From NCBI GenBank assembly GCA_964234715.1, contig OZ174275.1: 64,000 nucleotides of DNA. One strand, given 5' to 3'. Position numbers and translations under genes: made by a program. Every line of letters begins with the position of its first letter. The stretch's first letter is position 1. This document shows positions 30,390 to 63,602 of the stretch, piece after piece. A model generated the notes under the pieces. That model saw nothing but the letters and a program-made list of their open reading frames with translations, had not been told where the DNA came from and searched no databases. The stretch comes from Podarcis melisellensis (lineage: Eukaryota).

Positions 30390-30712
30390 TTAATCCTTGG
30401 AGATCAGGTTCCCTGATAAACAGTGTATGCTCCAATTAGTATAAAAATGTTTGTTCCCATAGGAATGCTTGCAAAAGGAATTTAAGACACAGTGGCAGAA
30501 AGATATAGTTCTTTTGTTAACCTCAGCAGATGGGGTAGACCTGACCCTGAATGAAATCAGTCACACACACTTTGCTTACTAGGACGATAACTTTATTGAG
30601 GACTTAAAGGTACATTGTAGCTGAATCACCGAGTCACAGAAAGAAAACACTTCTGAAGGTTGGTGGTGGGGCACTTCCACTGTCAAGTGACTTTCTTCCT
30701 AGTCATACAGGT
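30390..30712 (+). promoter_or_regulatory. Putative OR promoter plus non-coding exon 1 and splice donor of gene 7 (paralogs at ~26705-27046, 36035-36359, 41822-42145)
   Basis: O/E(EBF)-like TCCTTGGAGA and TTCCCATAGGAA, homeodomain-like CAATTAG, TATAAAAA; conserved donor AG|GTAGGT at 27045, 30711, 36358 and 42144. Confidence 0.45.
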
Positions 30713-31898
30713 AGGTAGTTTCTGATCCCATCAAGTTACATGTGTTCTATCATTATTGCACTTTTACAGTGCTTCTGACTGGGGATATGAATGGTGAATG
30801 TGTGTGAATGTGTGTGTGTATACTTTCTCTGTGTGCGGTGAACACACACATATATATGAAAGAGTGTGTGCATGAGAGAATGGGTTGTGTATTTTTAGGG
30901 ATGGGTGAATACTGCTTGATGTGAATGGGGCATTTGGGTAGTTAGAATGTGAGATGTGGGGGAGGGGAGTGAACAGTGTATATATGTGAAATGGGAGGAC
31001 TTCAGTGAAGGTATCAGATGGAATCACACTCCAAAGAAATTTTAATACTGTTCCAGGCAGCCCAAATCTCCACATGGTGGTAGATTTTAGGGGTTCCAGC
31101 AATTTTTCAGGGTTCATTTTCCTTGGAATGAAGCTCAGGGAAGACTGTGGTGCATATAGGATATCTAGTTTCATTTAGACACAAACAGTATATAACCTGA
31201 GCATAAGATGGAGGGGCTCACAGCATTAACACCCCACCAGATCTTGTTTCTCTATCAGTCCCAGCTTTGGATATAGCACAGTTCCAGCATGTCTCTGTTT
31301 CTCCAGCTTCCAGCCTGCTTCCAGCTCAGTTCACACCCAGCCACCAGACTATTATTTTCCTCTAGCAGCTAGGTGAGCGCAAGTGGATGAAAGGCCCCCC
31401 CCCCTATTAGTCTGGAAGGCACCGTCACCTAGTGGTAGCCTAGCTCATTCGTTTTGGATGCCGAGGAGGACACTTAAGGGGTCAGCTAAAGCCATTCTAT
31501 TACACGGAAACTTCTCCAACTAGATCAGCTATCTCCTCTGTTAGATTCTAACCCTCACTGGGTACACAGAGCTCCCTGATGCTTAGCGGCTGTTTCCCAC
31601 TTTACTTTTCATGGCTGCCTTACTCTTTCTAATGGCAGGGCTGGCTTTAAACCAGACACAAACATATGTTCTCCCTTGAGCAGAAGATGTGCATGTAGCA
31701 GCCCCCTGGTATGCCTGTACAGTCCTTCCTAGAACAAGGTGACAACTATAGGCTAAAGCACTAAAATATATAGCTGTATGTCTTATTTAGTTATTAAGTT
31801 ATTAAGAACAAAATCCCAAACAAGTCTACCCTGAAGGATTTCCAGCTGAATGCAATGTGGCTTAGTCCCAGGTAAGTAAGCCTAGGATAACAGCTTCA

Positions 31899-31936
<38 letters not shown>

Positions 31937-32016
31937 TTTCGTAGATTTTCACGGGTACAGGAATGCAGGTTTTGGTGTCCTCGGGTGTCTTCCCGTGTAA
32001 AAGTTGGGGTGTCTAG

Positions 32017-32054
32017 GCGACGTTTCGACGAGGTCTCACTCGTCATCTTCAGGC
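32017..32054 (-). ncRNA. Minimal type I hammerhead ribozyme motif (copy A)
   Basis: Exact reverse complement of 32475-32512. Confidence 0.75.
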
Positions 32055-32474
32055 TGGTGCTTTCGGCTTCTTGTTACTGGAACAGAGCAGGATCTCAGTG
32101 TTTGAGTTCCTATAAATACTGTTGAGGGGGTGTGGTGTATAGCCTCCAATGTTCTGGGCAGAGAGGAAGTTCCCAGGCTAGTGTGCCTTTTCTTCTTTTG
32201 TTCCTTAATTACTTGAGGGATATCTTGAGTGATTTCTTGAGTGATATCCACACCTAATGACCCACCTAAGTGGTACTCAGGATATCACTCAAGAAATCAC
32301 TCAAGATATCCCTCAAGTAATTAAGGAACAAAAGAAGAAAAGGCACACTAGCCTGGGAACTTCCTCTCTGCCCAGAACATTGGAGGCTATACACCACACC
32401 CCCTCAACAGTATTTATAGGAACTCAAACACTGAGATCCTGCTCTGTTCCAGTAACAAGAAGCCGAAAGCACCA

Positions 32475-32512
32475 GCCTGAAGATGACGAGTGAGACCTCG
32501 TCGAAACGTCGC
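32475..32512 (+). ncRNA. Minimal type I hammerhead ribozyme motif (PLE pLTR, copy B)
   Basis: gc-CTGAAGA(T)-GACGAG-tgagac-CTCGTC-GAAAC-GTC^gc: CUGANGA core at 32477, 6-bp stem II, GAAA, palindromic ACGT stem III; predicted cleavage after 32510. Confidence 0.75.
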
Positions 32513-32561
32513 CTAGACACCCCAACTTTTACACGGGAAGACACCCGAGGACACCAAAACC

Positions 32562-32610
<49 letters not shown>

Positions 32611-32690
32611 TTTCGTAGATTTTCACGGGTACAGGAATGCAGGTTTTGGTGTCCTCGGGTGTCTTCCTGTGTAAAAGTTGGGGTGTCTAG

Positions 32691-32728
32691 GCGACGTTTC
32701 GACGAGGTCTCACTCGTCATCTTCAGGC
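32691..32728 (-). ncRNA. Minimal type I hammerhead ribozyme motif (copy C), overlapping the ORF stop
   Basis: Exact reverse complement of 32475-32512; encodes PEDDE* of the PLE ORF. Confidence 0.75.
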
Positions 32729-33786
32729 TGGTGCTTTCGGCTTCTTGTTACTGGAACAGAGCAGGATCTCAGTGTTTGAGTTCCTATAAATACTGTTGAG
32801 GGGGTGTGGTGTATAGCCTCCAATGTTCTGGGCAGAGAGGAAGTTCCCAGGCTAGTGTGCCTTTTCTTCTTTTGTTCCTTAATTACTTGAGGGATATCTT
32901 GAGTGATTTCTTGAGTGATATCCTGAGTACCACTTAGGTGGGTCATTAGGTGTGGATTAGTTGCTAAAGTCTTTGTGTCTTGACCTCTTGAACTTTGTGA
33001 AGAGTTTTTCTGAGAAGATGGCTGTACTGCACTTAGTTGTGCTCTGGCTTGGCTTCGTGTATAGGGGCGAGCTGTGGTTTTGTGGCCTGTGTCAGCCAGA
33101 TCTGTGTAGGGATTGCAGGGGGGTGCAGCATCCGGAGGTGCCACCATGGTTTGGCTACTGGATGGTGTCTGTAATTTATCTGTGGAGAGGGTCTGGGTTT
33201 GGGTCTGGTGTGGTTGATTGGTGATGGCGTTCTGTGTGCCTCTGGATCTGGTGTCAGTTTTTGTGGGGAGGGCTAATTTCCAGATGTCTGGCAAGCGGGA
33301 TGTGTCGTCACGCTTGTTCATGTTGTGAGGGTGTTTCTCTATCTCGATGGCTTCCATGATTATTCTCTTGTGGTGATGTTCCATGTTAAAGAGCAATTTG
33401 GAATCTGCAAAATTAATTTCGTGTCCTGTTTCTTTCATGTGTTGGAAAAGAGAGGAAGTTTTTTCTTCTTTTTTGACGGCATTCTTGTGTTCTGCGATGC
33501 GTGCATTTATTCGTCTGTTTGTTTGTCCAATGTACGTGGCTGGGCAGACTTTGCAGGGTATTTCATAGACCCCTTGGTTTTCCAACTGGATTTTATCCTT
33601 GGGGTTTCTGAGGATATTGGCTATTTTTTGGTTGGTGCAAAAGGCTGTTTTGATATTGTGTTTATGGAGGATTTTGCTAATTTTATCTGTAGTGCCCTTG
33701 ATATAAGGAAGGAGGGCCATGCCATTGTTTTCTTCTGTGTCTTGGTTTTTGGGGGGTGTTTCTTTTTGGATTAGCTTCGTAACCCT
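32710..33786 (-). CDS. 5'-truncated PLE ORF: linker, GIY-YIG endonuclease, ~185-aa low-complexity tail (RT domain missing)
   Basis: LPYIKG...KILHKHNIKT linker; GVYEIPCKVCPATYIGQT..R...RIAEH...EAIEI...NKRD; no stops. The track's N-terminal IYIYIY comes from the TA repeat. Confidence 0.9.
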   Translation of the reverse strand, partial: RVTKLIQKETPPKNQDTEENNGMALLPYIKGTTDKISKILHKHNIKTAFCTNQKIANILRNPKDKIQLENQGVYEIPCKVCPATYIGQTNRRINARIAEHKNAVKKEEKTSSLFQHMKETGHEINFADSKLLFNMEHHHKRIIMEAIEIEKHPHNMNKRDDTSRLPDIWKLALPTKTDTRSRGTQNAITNQPHQTQTQTLSTDKLQTPSSSQTMVAPPDAAPPCNPYTDLADTGHKTTARPYTRSQARAQLSAVQPSSQKNSSQSSRGQDTKTLATNPHLMTHLSGTQDITQEITQDIPQVIKEQKKKRHTSLGTSSLPRTLEAIHHTPSTVFIGTQTLRSCSVPVTRSRKHQPEDDE

Positions 33787-34271
33787 GCATATATATATAT
33801 ATATATATATGAATTGCATCTTCAATCATCTAACCTGAAAATGAAAAGAAAGCAGATGCAAATTCATACAGCAAAATATTACTGTAAATTTTAAAGATAA
33901 TGGATTTTCAAGAAAATTGAAAAGAAACTTGTTTAAGGAATGGAACGTTGCAAAATGATATTTGTTAAATTATAGAAATATTGTTTGTAATATCCCTAGA
34001 CGTTAAGATGAGCCTTATTTTATTTTATATCTGCAGATTGAGAAGAAAAAGCAAAATCATGCTCTACAACCTAAGGCACACAAACAGTCGGTACATATCA
34101 ACAACCCAAGAAATGCCCTTTACTTAGTACAGCCAGACTTTTTTGGTTATGACTACTGAAGGTATATCATTCGCTCTTCCCAGCTGAATCCATCCTCTCC
34201 CCCAACTGAAATCATATAAAGATCCATGTTCATTCGAAATAAAAAATAGCAGGAATAAATCAGCTACAAAA

Positions 34272-35216
34272 ATGTCCACAGAAAATACCAGTGTTGTGTC
34301 TGAATTTATCTTTGTGGGATTTGCAGATGTACTGGAACTGAAGATTCCCATCTTCACATTGTTGCTGCTGATCTATGTTATCACTGTGGTGGGCAACCTA
34401 GGGATGATTTTGCTGATCAGAATGGACTCTCAGCTGCACACCCCCATGTACTTCTTCCTCAGTAATCTGGCTTTCTTAGATTTTTGCTATTCCTCCAACA
34501 TCACCCCCAAAGCCTTAAGCAATTTCCTATCAGAGAGGAGAACCATTTCTTTCCTGGGTTGCATAATACAACTGTATTTCTTTGTTGCTCTGGCAAGTAC
34601 AGAGTTCATGCTATTTGGGCTAATGGCTTATGACCGCTATGTGGCCATCTGCAACCCTTTGTTGTACACTTCAATCATGTCACACACCCGATGCATCAGG
34701 ATGGCTGGGGGAGCATTCACAGCCGGCTTCTTGAACTCAATCATTCATACCACTTTGGTAGGTACTTTGTCTTTTTGCCAGTCTAACGAAATCAACCATT
34801 TCTTCTGTGAGATCCCCCCACTACTCAAGCTCTCATGTTCTGATACATCCATAGCTGAAACACTAGTTTTCATGTGTGCTGGAATCAATATGTTAGGCTC
34901 TCTCTTGATAATCCTGAGTTCTTACCTGTACATCCTTTTCACGGTGCTCCAGATGAAGTCAGCCAAGGGCCGGAAGAAAGCCTTTTCCACCTGCATCTCC
35001 CACCTGATTGCTGTGATCATATTCTATGGAACTGGCCTGTTTATATATTTGCAACCTAGTTCCAACTATTCAGAGGATCAGAATAAAGTTGTGTCAATGT
35101 TTTATGCCTTTGTCATCCCAATGCTCAACCCTTTAATTTACAGTCTGAGGAACAAGGAGGTGAAGGAGGCAATGAAGAGAGTGATGGATAAGAATGCATT
35201 TTCACATTTACTATAA
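34272..35216 (+). CDS. Olfactory receptor, class II; gene 7 (array copy 2)
   Basis: 314 aa, canonical motifs; acceptor AG at 34035-34036. Confidence 0.97.
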
Positions 35217-39014: not shown

Positions 39015-39242
39015 AGCAGAAGATGTGCATGTAGCAGCCCCCTGGTATGCCTGCACAGTCCTTCCTAGAACAAGGTGACAACTATAGGCTAAAGCACTAA
39101 AATATATAGCTCTGTATGTCTTATTTAGTTATTAAGTTATTAAGAACAAACTCCCATACAAGTCTACCCTGAAGTATTTTCAGCTGAATGCAATGTGGCT
39201 TAGTCCCAGGTAAGTAAGTCTAGGATAACAGCTTCAAATAAT

Positions 39243-39304
<62 letters not shown>
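39243..39304. repeat. (TA)n/(TG)n microsatellite; empty-site equivalent of the PLE insertion
   Basis: Flanks CAGCTTCAAAT and ATATGAATTGCATCTT match 31891-31901 and 33807-33822. Confidence 0.9.
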
Positions 39305-39765
39305 GAATTGCATCTTAAATTCTCAAACCTGAAAATGAAAAGAAAGCAGATGCAAATTCATACAGCAAAATATTACTGTAAATTTTAAAGATAATGGATT
39401 TTCAAGAAAATTGAAAAGAAACTTGTTTAAGGAATGGAATGTTGCAAAATGATATTTGTTAAATTATAGAAATATTATTTGTAATATCCCAGGACGTTAA
39501 GATAAGGCTTATATTATTTTATATCTTCAGATTGAGAAGAAAAATCAAAATCATGCACTACAACGTAAGGCACACAAGCAGTTGGTACATATCGACAACC
39601 CAAGACATGCCCTTTACTTAGTACAACCAGACTTTTTTGGTTATGACTACTGAAGGTATATCATTCGCTCGTCCCAGCTGAATCCATTCTCTCCTCCAAC
39701 TGAAATTATATGAAGATCCATGTTCATTCGAAATAAAAAATAGCAGGAATAAATCAGCTACAAAA

Positions 39766-40710: not shown

Positions 40711-43700
40711 AATACTATATCAACAGACTGTCGAATTAATTAGATTGCATGTTAGATTTTATTCAAGTCCTCTAGCCTTGTTATGTAAAGTACGTAAGCA
40801 TGTTCTTCATTTAAACATATCTGTAATGCAACACAACTGTCTATGTTCTTTGCCATATTTTTAAACATTTTAGAGAACATATGGATCCTCATTGTATTTG
40901 GAGTTGATAGTCAAGTATTCACCCTGATACAATGAGCATTGAGCTATTAGAAAACACTCCCCAAAAAGAGGCCCTCAAAATTTGCAAGAAAGAAGCAATG
41001 CAAAAATGATGGTAGAGCTGAATGCATGTGTTCCCAAATTGATTAAAATGGGTGGGAAACCTGGGGTCCTCCAGATTTCTTTGGACTCTGATTTCCTTCA
41101 TCCACACCCGGCGTAGAATCCTTCTGGACCATGAGGGTAAGAAGGCTTTGGGGGAGAAGAAAAAAACATTGTTCTGTGTGGTTATGCTACTTCTTGAAAT
41201 ACAAGATGGTGCTGGGTACTGTTTCCCTAAAATGTGACCTTTGACAGGTAGGCCCTGAATGGTTGTATCCTGTCTCCCATGCTTTTGACATCTACCTGAA
41301 GAAGTCACCTGTAGTTTGGGGGTAGGATGTCATCACAATGCTGATGCCACCCAGCTCTTACTTATTGCTTCCACGATTCAATCCTGGCGAGGCACTGCAA
41401 ATTCTAAACTTTTCATAGTTTTGGAAGAAAATCAATTGAAATGTAATCAAGGTAGAACAGAAGCAATCTTGGTTGGCCATTTTAATGATCTTGGAGGAAG
41501 TACACAGACTTTTCTCAGCTGGCTCTACAGAAGTGCCCTTATATTCAGAAAGATAGAATATACATTTCTGAAAGAATCTAAAGAACTAGGGTGGTTGGTT
41601 TCATACCTCACGTGGTAGTACAAGCGTTTATCTGCAGGGCTAGAGGGTTATGGAAAGAGTTTATACTATGTGGAGAAGTAGCTGAGCTGAGTTCATCCTT
41701 GCCTTGGTAATGTGGTCTGTGTTGCTTGCAAGCCCAATCAATAAAGTTGTGTCTGTTAATGGTCTACCTTTTACCTGGTCCAATAATATGGAAATAACAA
41801 CTTCTGAGTCTCTGGATCTTTCTTATTCCTTGGAGATTAAGTTCCCTGATAAAAAATGTATGCTCTAATTAGTATAAAAATGTTTGTTCCCATATGTATA
41901 CTTGCAAAAGGAATTTAAGGCACAGTGGCAGAAAGATATAGTTCTTTTGTAAACCTCAGCAGATGGGGTAGACATGACCCTGAATGAAATCAGCCCCACA
42001 CTCTTTGCTTACTAGGATGATTACTTTATTGAGGACTTAAATGTACATTGTAGCTGAATCACTGAGTCACAGAAAGAAAACACTTCTGAAGGTTGGTGGT
42101 GGGGCACTTCCACTGTCAAGTGACTTTCTTCGTAGTCATACAGGTAGGTAGTTTCTGATCCCATCAAGTTACATGTGTTCTATCATTATTGCCCTTTTAC
42201 AGTGCTTCCGACTGGGGATATGAATGGTGTCTTTGTGTGTATGTGTGTGTCTATACTTTCTCTGTGTGTAGCACACACACGCATATATATGAAAGGGTGT
42301 GTGCATGAGAGAATGGGTTGTGAATTTTTAGGGATGGGTGAGTATTGCTTGATGTGTGAATGGGGCATTTGGGTAGATAGAATGTGAGATGTGGGGGAAG
42401 GGAAAGGAGAGGGAACAGTGTATATATGTGAAATGGGAGGACTTCAGTACAGGTATCAGATGGAATCATCCTCCAAAGAAATGTTACTACTGTTCCAGGC
42501 AGCCCTAATCTCCAATGGTGGGAGATTTTAGAGGTTCCAGCACTTTTTCAGGTTTCATTTTTCTTGGAATGAAGCCCAGCGAAGACTGTGGTGCATTTAA
42601 GATATCTAGTTTCATTTAGACACATACAGTATATAACCTAAGCATAAAATGGAGGGGCTCACAACATTAACACCCCACCAGATCTTGTTTCTCTATCAGT
42701 CCCAGCTTTGGATATAGCACAGTTCCATCATGTCCCTGTTTCTCCAGCTTCCAGCCTGCTTCCAGCTCAGTTCACACCCACCCACCAGACTATTGTTTTC
42801 CTCTCTAGTAGCTAGGTGTGTGCAAGTGGATGAAAGGCCCACATATTACTCTGGAAGGCACCATCACCTAGTGGTAGCCTAGCTCATTCGTTTTGGATGC
42901 CGAGGAGGACACTTAAGGGGTCAGCTAAAGCCATTCTATTACAAGGAAACTTCTCTGACTAGTTCAGCAATCTATATTAGATTCCAACCCTCACTGGTTA
43001 CAGGAGCCCAATAATTGGAAGGGTCTTAGGGCATTATCCAGACAGGACCCCAAAATCCACGGTGCTGATAACTGCAGTCCTTCAGCAATCGACAGATACT
43101 TGTGTCATGCACAGACTCATTATCTTATCCAGACCTGCCCCCTATCTCTCTATTTAACATTAGGGACGCAGGTAAAGGCCGATCACAACAACAACATCCC
43201 CCATAATAACTGTTGTTCATCCATGAATGATGGAGGTATTGCCCATCATTTATGGGTGGACAACTACTTTCTTCAGGGCCATATAATTCAGAGAGTTAGG
43301 GAAATGAATCATCTATTAGTGTAGTAGCACAGCACTTACGTAAAAAATGTGTAACTAATTACATATAATTTACTGAGGGTTTTCTTAAAAAATACACAAA
43401 AAACGACCCTGAGAAAATATAATTGCATTCACTTCAACAAGAAACTCCATTTCTAATCAGTGAATAAACAAGGAGGTTGGGAATTTCTGCATCTGTGCCC
43501 ATGTACAGTGGAGATCTCTGACATAGGGTTGCCATTTTTCAAACAGTGAAAATCCAGACAGAAAAGCCTTACTTTATTTTTTATTTGCAGATTGAGAAGA
43601 AAAAGAAAAAATATGCTCTACAACCTAAGGCACACAAGCTGTCTGTACACATTGACAACCCAGGAAATGCATTACTTAGTACAATCAGACTTTTTTGGTT

Positions 43701-50123: not shown

Positions 50124-50301
50124 TGATGAAATGCAGAGAAAAGGGGACACAAGCTCTTCTTAGTCCATTTGTTATCTACTTTGTGTATAGATAGACTTGT
50201 AAAGGAGTGGTCTAGAAGAATATATAAACCTGGTCAGAGACACCTGAGTATGAAGAAGCCACACTTCTACATGGTTTGGTTCTAATGTACTATGTTGTTT
50301 T

Positions 50302-50472
50302 GATGTGGCTCACTGGTAGAGCATCTGCTTTGCATGCAGAAGATCCCAGGTGGGGCTGGGAGAGATCCCCATCTGAAATACTGGAGAGCAGCTGCCAGTC
50401 AGAGTAAAAAAATATTGTGCTAGATTGACCAATTGTCTGACTTAGGATATATAGCATCTTTCCATGATTCCT
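50302..50472 (+). mobile_element. Short tRNA-derived SINE (internally deleted)
   Basis: TGGCTCACTGGTAGAGCATCTGCTTTGCATGCAGAAG head; core CTGGAGAGCAGCTGCCAGTCAG; TTCCATGATTCCT tail. Confidence 0.65.
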
Positions 50473-62330: not shown

Positions 62331-63602
62331 GAACAACTCCAGGCACGCCTGGAAGAAGCGGACCATTTGGATCCCTTCCAGTCAGGATTCAGGCCTCATC
62401 ATGGGACTGAAACTGCCTTGGTCGCACTGGTTGATGATCTCCGGCGGGCTAGGGACAAAGGTGAGAGCTGTTTCCTAGTTCTGCTGGATCTCTCAGCGGC
62501 GTTTGATACCATCGACCATAACATCCTTCTGGACCGTCTTGAGGGGCTGGGAGCTGGGGGCACTGTCATACAGTGGTTCTGCTCCTTCCTCCTGGGCCGT
62601 GTTCAAAAAGTGGTGGGGGGGGATGAGTGTTCAGACCCCTGGGCTCTCACTTGTGGGGTGCCTCAGGGTTCTGTCCTCTCCCCCATGCTTTTCAGCATTT
62701 ACATGCAGCCGCTGGGAGAGATCATCAGGAGGTTTGGGCTGGGTGTTCATCAGTATGTGGATGATACCCAGCTCTACCTCTCTTTTAAATCAGAACCAGT
62801 GAAGGCGGTGAAGGTCCTGTGTGAGTGTCTGGAGGCAGTTGGAGGATGGATGGCGGCTAACAGATTGAGGTTGAATCCTAACAAGACAGAAGTACTGTTT
62901 GTGGGGGACAGGAGGTGGGCAGGTGTGGAGGATTCCCTGGTCCTGAATGGGGTAACTGTGCCCCTGAAGGAGCAGGTGCGCAGCCTGGGAGTCATTTTGG
63001 ACTCACAGCTGTCCATGGAGGCACAGGTCAAATCTGTATCCAGGGCAGCTGTTTACCAGCTCCATCTGGTACACAGGCTGAGACCCTATCTGCCTGCAGA
63101 CTGCCTTGCCAGAGTGGTGCATGCTCTGGTTATCTCCCACTTGGACTACTGCAATGCACTCTACGTGGGGCTACCTTTGAAGGTGACTCGGAAACTACAA
63201 CCAATCCAGAATACGGCAGCTAGACTGGTGACTGGGAGCGGCCGCCGAGACCATGTAACACCAGTCTTGAAAGACCTACATTGGCTCCCAGTACGTTTCC
63301 GAGCACAATTCAAAGTGTTGTTGCTGACCTTTAAAGCCCTAAACGGCCTCGGTCCAGTATACCCGAAGGAGCGTCTCCACCCCCATCATTCTGCCCGGAC
63401 GCTGAGGTCCAGCGCTGAGGGCCTTCTGGCGGTTCCCTCATTGCGAGAAGCAAAGCTACAGGGAACCAGGCAGAGGGCCTTCTTGGTAGTGGCGCCCGCC
63501 CTGTGGAACGCCCTTCCAGCAGATGTCAAAGCGATAAACAACTACCTGACATTCAGAAGACATCTTAAGGCAGCCCTGTTCAGGGAAGTTTTAAACGTGT
63601 GA
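62331..63602 (+). CDS. L2 ORF2 fragment: uninterrupted reverse transcriptase and C-terminal region (no endonuclease, no true start)
   Basis: DPFQSGFRPHHGTETAL, LLDLSAAFDTIDH, GVPQGSVLSP, YVDDTQLY, LNPNKTE, LGVILD, LHWLPV. Confidence 0.88.
   Translation, partial: EQLQARLEEADHLDPFQSGFRPHHGTETALVALVDDLRRARDKGESCFLVLLDLSAAFDTIDHNILLDRLEGLGAGGTVIQWFCSFLLGRVQKVVGGDECSDPWALTCGVPQGSVLSPMLFSIYMQPLGEIIRRFGLGVHQYVDDTQLYLSFKSEPVKAVKVLCECLEAVGGWMAANRLRLNPNKTEVLFVGDRRWAGVEDSLVLNGVTVPLKEQVRSLGVILDSQLSMEAQVKSVSRAAVYQLHLVHRLRPYLPADCLARVVHALVISHLDYCNALYVGLPLKVTRKLQPIQNTAARLVTGSGRRDHVTPVLKDLHWLPVRFRAQFKVLLLTFKALNGLGPVYPKERLHPHHSARTLRSSAEGLLAVPSLREAKLQGTRQRAFLVVAPALWNALPADVKAINNYLTFRRHLKAALFREVLNV

Follow-up and report, generated by a model that had tools for sequence, protein, structure and literature searches.

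Introduction

Conserved intronic hammerheads are reported from amniotes (references in PMC6765202). The minimal hammerheads of metazoan Penelope-like elements (PLEs) are reportedly treated by Lunse et al. 2017 (cited in PMC6765202). Among PLEs, the closest studied relative of the element described here is PAc, the Poseidon of Anolis carolinensis (Frangieh et al. 2024, PMC11167929). The open reading frame (ORF) of PAc begins at stem II of its hammerhead, and reverse transcription initiates 111-118 nt into that ORF, with two start sites that bound the tail (PMC11167929). The element cuts and extends both strands of DNA at AT-rich sites, and its hammerhead requires addition of the element's own protein to cleave and leaves no cleavage ends in RNA-seq (PMC11167929). 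More generally, PLE minimal hammerheads have an architecture that needs a dimer, and even in dimeric form their cleavage is poor (Cervera and de la Pena 2014, PMC4209133), and fold-back layouts, partial tandem layouts and a bias towards microsatellites are typical of PLEs (PMC8557442). In Xenopus, about 43% of the copies of hammerhead-bearing retrozymes are intronic (bioRxiv 10.64898/2026.07.22.740005).

Here we examine a 64-kb stretch of DNA from the lizard Podarcis melisellensis (the window, meaning the whole stretch analysed), in which three hammerhead motifs lie beside an olfactory receptor (OR) gene, gene 7. We propose that they belong to a recent, dead-on-arrival insertion of Penelope/Poseidon type, which entered a (TA)n tract within the probable 5'UTR intron of this gene, and that the motifs are passengers of it. 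We give this reading a probability of about 85%.

Results

String search of the window finds the 34-nt motif at exactly the places that a preliminary description of this DNA had given, namely 32477-32510 on the plus strand (copy B) and 32019-32052 (copy A) and 32693-32726 (copy C) on the minus strand, and there is no fourth exact occurrence elsewhere in the window. Copy B, the only one on the plus strand, would be sense in the putative OR pre-mRNA, and copies A and C are antisense to the OR transcript. The motif consists of a core, C3-U-G-A-A-G8-A9, followed by an unpaired U (at 32484 in copy B) between A9 and G10.1, and then a 6-bp stem II (GACGAG/CUCGUC), within the expected 6-8 bp, which includes the G10.1-C11.1 pair and carries a 6-nt loop. 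On the 3' side of stem II come GAAA, the palindrome A-C-G-U (the 15.1-16.1 segment, directly after GAA) in place of helix III, and C17. The catalytic boxes, CUGANGA with C3 and G8, GAAA and the U-H dinucleotide, are present at 3/3 sites (CUGAAGA...GAAA...GUC), and scission of copy B is predicted between 32510 and 32511. The start codon of the PLE, an ATG at 32483-32485, lies inside the copy B motif, A9, the extra U and G10.1 being its three letters.

There is no stable helix III, and the palindrome that replaces it permits a dimer. As had been claimed, the repeats bear a minimal hammerhead of the dimer type known from PLEs. The accompanying caution that helix I has only about 2 bp is also correct, since it is GC/GC in all three copies and falls short of the 4-5 bp expected of a PLE minimal hammerhead; inspection by eye of the window and of squamate relatives found no conserved longer, bulged helix I. 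Judged by sequence, the motif is a PLE minimal hammerhead in every feature but the length of this helix, and it sits in a PLE pseudo-LTR, downstream of a fragment of a GIY-YIG ORF.

A strict descriptor (core, 0-1 extra nt, G10.1-C11.1, stem II of at least 5 bp, GAAA, a complementary 15.2/16.2 pair and U-H) recovers the same three sites and none in 200 first-order Markov simulated windows, both strands being searched, and a chance match is therefore rejected as the origin of the motif. The three sites are copies of one sequence and not independent occurrences. A covariance search, which the preliminary description had suggested as a check, gave no such confirmation: the Rfam hammerhead models (type I/II/III, HH9 and HH10) have no match, whether in the whole window at the gathering score or, with E values up to 10, in searches of 2.1 kb and of a 121-nt stretch. 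The many 'miRNA' matches that Rfam gives for the 2.1 kb at this looser limit are spurious, caused by the long inverted repeats and (TA)n tracts.

The insert spans 31935-33788 and is made up of a 5'-truncated Poseidon-type PLE and a fold-back mini-copy, set within a (TA)n microsatellite whose left tract (31904-31934, to be compared with the empty site of a paralogue) and right tract (33789-33812) represent the target. Tail copy A (31935-32249, minus strand) corresponds to the final 315 nt of the PLE unit, and with it the inverted tail copy B (32246-32566, plus strand) forms the fold-back, the A/B junction being a 4-nt microhomology, ATCC (32246-32249), and the loop between them 32250-32279. An internal (TA)n tract (32567-32608) separates B from copy C (32609-33788, minus strand), which 5' truncation to 1.18 kb has left without a reverse transcriptase domain. 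Copy C comprises the C-terminal part of the ORF, where a GIY-YIG signature falls at about 33316-33576, a spacer that is not conserved, and the tail. Relative to the start codon of the ORF, the 3' ends lie at +112 in A and C and at +84 in B, and a 28-nt terminal 'tail' is accordingly found in A and C and missing from B. All four junctions adjoin (TA)n tracts. With its inverted pseudo-LTR fold-back next to copy C, its microsatellite target and its tail, which in PLEs is optional and 30-40 bp long, the layout is that of a PLE.

Between tail A and the reverse complement of tail B 0/287 positions differ, and tail C has a single difference from either of them, at base 32668, which is not part of the motif. 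The observed/expected CpG ratio is 0.46 in the insert versus 0.19 in the flanks. The minus-strand ORF of the insert bears a GIY-YIG signature, with PF01541 reaching 22.0 bits (E 2e-4), just below the cut-off of 22.6, so that Pfam at its default threshold reports no domain on the PLE fragment. The best homologues of this ORF are fragments of squamate PLEs with 72-96% identity, named as GIY-YIG domain proteins and carrying PF01541, PF00078 (RVT_1, in the homologues) and PF26215. The GIY-YIG fragment, the squamate homologues, the near-identical tails and the high CpG ratio all agree with the earlier view of this as a 'fresh' Penelope insertion.

The same hammerhead occurs downstream of the endonuclease ORF in copies from Phrynocephalus, an agamid lizard, and from the snakes Ahaetulla and Crotalus. 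In both snakes the closing pair of stem II has changed from G-C to A-U, a compensatory change, and single G-U changes are seen elsewhere; helix I is again GC/GC (2 bp) in all of the squamate relatives. The architecture recurs, in a different sequence, in a firefly relative with the palindrome A-G-C-U and a helix I of 5 bp. The tail that bears the motif is about 79% conserved, and the 265 nt preceding it are not alignable. One Phrynocephalus locus (L001) has the same inverted layout, and one Phrynocephalus copy likewise adjoins (TA)n.

On the host side, gene 7 has the sequence of an intact, lizard-type olfactory receptor gene. A putative non-coding first exon (30620-30710, plus strand, start approximate) ends at a donor GT at 30711-30712, and a putative second exon (34037-35216, plus strand), which follows an acceptor AG at 34035-34036, contains the coding sequence (34272-35216, 314 aa, 7tm_4). 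The exon-1 block with its AG/GTAGGT donor (30711) is common to 4/4 paralogues, one of them only about 68% identical, and the acceptor at 34036 is likewise conserved in 4/4. This conservation upholds the claim that the two sites flank the insert and makes it plausible that the insert lies in the 5'UTR intron of gene 7, about 225 bp upstream of the acceptor, although three of the paralogues are recent duplicates and only gene 6 is therefore informative on this point. An alternative donor, CAG/GTAAGT at 31873, finds a conserved counterpart in gene 8, but gene 6 has a degraded form of it and gene 9 a deletion, and because it is so poorly kept we prefer the donor at 30711; on the predicted splice sites the insert is intronic whichever of the two applies. 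Sequence comparison within the window confirms that paralogues 6, 8 and 9 do not carry the insert, and the empty site in paralogue 8 (39239-39307) is (TA)n(TG)n(TA)n. A domesticated ribozyme would be expected to show orthologous or paralogous conservation at the intronic site, and none was found in genes 6, 8 and 9.

In the predicted fold of the plus strand (minimum free energy -800 kcal/mol) copy B is fully paired, its motif falling within a perfect duplex of 287-321 bp. The double-hammerhead conformation has an energy of -18.1 kcal/mol versus a cofold minimum of -29.4, these being energy models that ignore tertiary contacts. The plus strand has one sense motif only, and it is thus without a partner in cis for the obligatory dimer. 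The suggestion that the two antisense copies could sequester the sense copy is in keeping with this model, which predicts that they do.

Discussion

We infer that the insert arose by target-primed reverse transcription in the (TA)n microsatellite of the probable 5'UTR intron of gene 7. This would have given two products, the 1.18-kb 5'-truncated copy C and the fold-back mini-copy of A and inverted B, the latter two probably being joined cDNA-to-cDNA through their 4-nt microhomology. Since every tail extends across the junction of pseudo-LTR and ORF, each has the minimal type I hammerhead that belongs to the element. The copy ends at +112 and +84 and the start codon inside the motif fit the biochemistry of PAc (PMC11167929). 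The motifs would belong to the life cycle of the transposon, as protein-assisted and dimer-dependent ribozymes. In the OR pre-mRNA the single sense copy would be a passenger, tied up with an antisense copy in a long perfect duplex, and no meaningful cleavage would be expected of it.

The preliminary description had gone further and raised a self-cleaving motif in the OR transcript with a regulatory effect. On such a reading, sense copy B would cleave the nascent pre-mRNA of gene 7 within the 5'UTR intron and lower or modulate its expression compared with paralogues 6, 8 and 9, the two antisense copies serving as a switch. The catalytic core is intact on the plus strand, the flanking donor and acceptor are conserved and conserved intronic hammerheads of amniotes offer a precedent. 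Retrozymes derived from PLE pseudo-LTRs are also somewhat depleted from Xenopus introns, but the intronic share of about 43% points the other way (bioRxiv 10.64898/2026.07.22.740005). A sole plus-strand sense copy has no cis partner for the dimer that this class requires (PMC4209133), helix I has 2 bp and the active dimer is thermodynamically disfavoured, and the motif lies in the perfect 287-321-bp duplex, whose partner, A, is transcribed first. Moreover, the hammerhead of the homologue PAc shows no activity unless the PAc protein is supplied and leaves no ends in vivo (PMC11167929), and cleavage of an intron need not lower the mRNA if splicing is fast. Given the single sense copy, the need for both a dimer and the PLE protein, and the long duplex, cleavage of the OR pre-mRNA by copy B is unlikely, even though co-transcriptional folding, helicases or co-expressed PLE protein could transiently enable the active fold, and we regard a regulatory switch of this kind as highly improbable.

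The host gene might instead be affected by means other than ribozyme catalysis, which we consider improbable. The near-perfect plus-strand duplex of about 290-320 bp that is predicted could be edited or diced as a dsRNA hairpin, could slow splicing, or could draw in small-RNA or heterochromatin silencing of transposable elements, and the insert is 225 bp from the acceptor. Promoters have been reported in PLE pseudo-LTRs (PMC11167929, PMC6765202), and the 231 nt of pseudo-LTR that precede the motif in copy B could also act as one, facing the coding exon. Against such effects, neither strong splice signals nor strong poly(A) signals occur on the plus strand of the insert. It would also be possible to regard the fold-back and triple tail as an artefact of assembly at (TA)n, with a single simple insertion as the true locus, because inverted PLE structures cause assembly problems (PMC8557442) and (TA)n tracts are difficult to assemble. 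This is scarcely credible when A and B meet at a clean 4-nt microhomology, when the copy ends match the two biochemically known start positions of reverse transcription (PMC11167929), and when the same inverted layout is seen in Phrynocephalus L001 and has been described for PLEs (PMC8557442).

On the preferred reading of a passenger insertion, the hammerhead motifs are genuine but of an ordinary kind. Published work already covers PLE hammerheads, fold-back PLE insertions, the AT-rich or microsatellite bias of these insertions and their frequent intronic location, and the value of this locus is modest: as a footprint left in vivo it agrees with the in vitro data on PAc, in its ends at +112 and +84, the probable priming from both target strands and the probable joining by microhomology. 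Four paralogous OR genes, with and without the insert, also make a tidy test case, a natural experiment. There is a very small chance that PLE protein or helicases permit cleavage, or that the hairpin triggers editing or silencing, so that the expression or choice frequency of gene 7 differs from that of genes 6, 8 and 9; if true, such a difference would be the first in vivo effect on a host gene of a PLE minimal hammerhead or fold-back.

How the locus stands to known systems can now be set out. The intronic hammerheads of amniotes and copy B are alike in lying on the sense strand of a host intron, a putative one for copy B, and in their presumed origin from retroelements. In amniotes the motifs are single-copy and deeply conserved, with stable helices and matches to Rfam models, whereas the motif here comes in young, near-identical transposon copies that the paralogues do not share, and has neither helix III nor an Rfam match. 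The non-LTR retrozymes of animals also bear hammerheads, are related to PLE pseudo-LTRs, and are widespread in non-mammalian vertebrates and often intronic (PMC7229834; bioRxiv 10.64898/2026.07.22.740005), but they are short direct tandem repeats with canonical type I hammerheads and circular RNAs, in contrast to the fold-back and ORF fragment found here. Among the minimal hammerheads of metazoan PLEs, helix I is usually 4-5 bp rather than the 2 bp of this motif, which only a D. virilis variant equals (PMC4209133).

PAc remains the nearest match, both being squamate PLEs with a GIY-YIG that is C-terminal in PAc and probably so here, a likeness judged from published anatomy. The present insert differs in being 5'-truncated, without reverse transcriptase and non-autonomous, and in its target, a pure (TA)n microsatellite versus the motif 5'-ATT-3' of PAc. 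Inserted copies of PAc end about 111-118 nt into the ORF, compared with 112 here, and its second, upstream start site of reverse transcription, which defines the optional tail, has its counterpart here at +84. Both insert at AT-rich targets, here too probably with both strands as primers, and it is this priming from both target strands that would explain the inverted copies.

Identity, anatomy and age of the insert

The insert at 31935-33788 lies in a (TA)n microsatellite upstream of the coding sequence of gene 7, an olfactory receptor (OR) gene on the plus strand, and the evidence supports its being a young Penelope-like element (PLE) with minimal hammerheads. From left to right, a (TA)n run (31904-31934) is followed by tail copy A (31935-32249, minus strand), tail copy B (32246-32566, plus strand), a second (TA)n run (32567-32608), copy C (32609-33788, minus strand) and a last (TA)n run (33789-33812). 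Copy A is identical to the reverse complement of B across 287 nt, and C differs from both at a single base, 32668. A and B meet at a 4-nt microhomology, ATCC (32246-32249), and fold back around a loop at 32250-32279. All four junctions of insert and (TA)n (31935, 32566, 32609 and 33788) read GCA/TATA on one strand and a related Phrynocephalus copy (locus L001:2625-2660) likewise ends in a (TA)n tract, which suggests that in this PLE lineage microhomology guides priming or joining within TA repeats.

On its minus strand copy C codes for the C-terminal portion of a PLE protein; this portion bears a GIY-YIG signature and scores just under the cut-off for Pfam PF01541 (22.0 bits against 22.6; E 2e-4). 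The reverse transcriptase (RT) part is absent, so this copy is non-autonomous. The best database relatives of copy C are squamate fragments (Phrynocephalus 74-82%, Ahaetulla 72%, Pseudonaja 79%, and Podarcis 96% over a short part), and a Logan contig reaches 96% identity in protein and 98% in DNA. Such relatives point to a squamate, probably a lacertid lizard, as the most likely source of the window. This signature and these relatives, together with the motif traits described below, support the initial identification of a Penelope element carrying minimal hammerheads. Past the GIY-YIG domain the minus-strand ORF also stays open for ~185 codons, its stop falling within the hammerhead (32710-33265, minus strand); since squamate relatives have no DNA alignable with this extension (element positions about 714-979) and do align with the following tail, it looks like a non-coding spacer that is open by chance.

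The copies show one difference in about 636 compared positions, and the insertion is therefore young, as the preliminary description had proposed in calling it fresh. It had also held that the paralogous genes 6, 8 and 9 lack the insert, and this is correct: in gene 8 the corresponding site (39239-39307) is an unbroken (TA)n(TG)n(TA)n, with flanks 94.6-96.4% identical to those of gene 7, and genes 6 and 9 are also without it. Gene 9 has no counterpart of gene 7 31567-34010, microsatellite included, and carries ~560 nt of unrelated sequence instead (43003-43564). The CpG observed/expected ratio is 0.46 in the insert and 0.19 in its flanks.

The hammerhead motif and its conservation

An exact string search of both strands places the 34-nt motif at 32477-32510 (plus), 32019-32052 (minus) and 32693-32726 (minus), precisely where it was first reported, and nowhere else in the window. 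Read as RNA, it consists of the core C3-U-G-A-A-G8-A9, one unpaired U, a 6-bp stem II with a 6-nt closing loop, G12-A-A, the palindrome A15.1-C-G-U16.1 in the position of helix III, and C17, with the predicted scissile bond of the plus-strand copy at 32510/32511; helix I is limited to 2 bp (GC/GC), again as first read. A strict descriptor demanded the core, G10.1-C11.1, at least 5 bp in stem II, GAAA, complementarity of the 15.2/16.2 pair and U-H, with 0-1 extra nt allowed; it returned the same three sites and no others in the window, and no match in 200 simulated 64-kb windows of the same dinucleotide make-up, both strands included. Being copies of a single sequence, the three sites amount to one event. 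In the covariance-model search proposed at the outset, no Rfam hammerhead model matched the window at gathering score, or the 2.1 kb or 121 nt searched at E up to 10. Strong Rfam 'miRNA' matches in the 2.1-kb search were rejected as by-products of long inverted repeats.

The DNA around eight homologues was inspected, and five loci (two in Phrynocephalus, and those in Ahaetulla, Crotalus and the Logan contig) carry this motif downstream of the endonuclease ORF, one Phrynocephalus locus having an additional inverted copy upstream. Both snakes have A-U in place of G-C as the pair that closes stem II, with both sides changed, and Ahaetulla and one Phrynocephalus copy have one G-U pair each. Tail and motif, which make up the final 200 nt of the unit, are ~79% identical between squamates and the preceding 265 nt cannot be aligned; thus the motif is a conserved part of this PLE lineage. 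A firefly relative (L004:5745-5771) builds the same architecture from a different sequence, with A as the additional base after A9, G10.1-C11.1, 6 bp in stem II, AGCU as the palindrome and 5 bp in helix I.

Proteins of beetles (the fireflies Aquatica and Pyrocoelia; Anoplophora, Leptinotarsa and Trypoxylus) share 40-65% identity with the endonuclease region of the squamate PLEs, which may reflect deep conservation or horizontal transfer. PLE-derived segments also occur in squamate gene models for P2Y purinoceptor 1 isoform X3, translin-associated factor X, acyl-CoA thioesterase 12 and olfactory receptor 10A7-like (one locus being L007:4656-4815); chimeric annotation or exonisation of PLE fragments is the probable explanation, and one of the segments lies in an OR model.

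The host gene and the fate of its transcript

Gene 7 has an intact ORF of 314 aa (34272-35216; 7tm_4, E 2e-55). The polypyrimidine tract and CAG of its acceptor, ending at 34036, and the block that follows are conserved in all four paralogues, even gene 6, where the upstream region is only about 68% identical. The donor AG/GTAGGT (30710/30711), with a nearly invariant 29-nt block upstream of it, is also conserved in all four. A second donor of perfect consensus, CAG/GTAAGT (31872/31873, within 31864-31880), precedes the (TA)n target by 30 nt. Genes 7 and 8 share it (gene 8: 39201-39217), gene 6 has a degraded form and gene 9 a deletion there; it may mark an alternative 5' exon end. The insert, 225 bp upstream of the acceptor, falls inside the putative intron with either donor. 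Judged from this conservation, we consider the intron about 70-75% likely to be real, and the original placing of motif B between a conserved donor and acceptor is plausible. Elsewhere in the window, the sole Rfam match at gathering score is a tRNA-like sequence with a long insertion (50299-50377, plus strand; 33 bits), probably a SINE of tRNA origin closely following an OR ORF, and a 411-aa ORF with RVT_1 (62367-63602, plus strand; E 4e-29) belongs to another retroelement whose DNA is unrelated to the PLE insert.

The preliminary description further suggested that the sense motif might cleave the OR transcript and so affect its regulation, which the analysis does not support. PLE motifs were reported to be inactive singly and to cleave poorly as dimers or trimers (Cervera and de la Pena, PMC4209133); with only one sense copy on the plus strand, the required dimer would have no partner in cis. 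The double-hammerhead conformation is modelled at -18.1 kcal/mol, where the best dimer fold reaches -29.4 and the monomers 2 x -11.6, and in isolation the motif is predicted to form stem II only (z = -1.1). In the predicted fold of the plus-strand transcript of 31900-33000 (MFE -800 kcal/mol) copy B is wholly paired with an antisense copy, in keeping with the early suggestion that such copies could sequester it; its partner A is transcribed ahead of it, 30 nt away. Moreover, the ribozyme of PAc, the Poseidon element of Anolis and the nearest experimentally studied PLE, cleaves only with protein present, and no RNA-seq reads start or end at its cut site (Frangieh et al., PMC11167929). Intronic copies of PLE-derived hammerheads are also common, about 43% of Xenopus retrozyme copies being intronic, with mild depletion relative to intergenic DNA (bioRxiv 10.64898/2026.07.22.740005). 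Taken with the 2-bp helix I, these points make cleavage by motif B very unlikely, and any effect of the insertion on gene 7 would more probably come from the long inverted repeat than from catalysis.

Comparison with known elements

The PLE minimal hammerhead is defined by a base left unpaired between 9 and 10.1, the pair G10.1-C11.1, a helix II that is long, a helix I that is short (2 bp in D. virilis) and a palindromic 15.2/16.2 (PMC4209133), and the window motif has exactly these traits. Published motif pairs lie on opposite strands 100-700 bp apart (PMC4209133). Agreement with PAc is close. The PAc ORF starts at stem II of the hammerhead and its cut site is 26 bp after the start codon (PMC11167929); here the start codon ATG is formed by A9, the extra U and G10.1 (32483-32485 in copy B), with the predicted cut 25 nt past it. 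Reverse transcription of PAc starts internally, 111-118 nt into the ORF, with a second start site at the boundary of an optional tail (PMC11167929), and copies A and C end at +112 from the start codon and B at +84, lacking the 28-nt tail. The PAc protein cleaves AT-rich DNA on both strands and extends both (PMC11167929). By such a route, target-primed reverse transcription would have put the element into the (TA)n tract, copy C being a simple 5'-truncated product and A and B a pair of cDNAs that had been primed on opposite strands, at the two RT start sites, and then linked through their microhomology. Partial tandem and inverted 5'-truncated copies, a 30-40-bp tail and a bias towards microsatellites are typical of PLEs (Craig et al., PMC8557442), and the insert is a new copy of this well-described kind of element.
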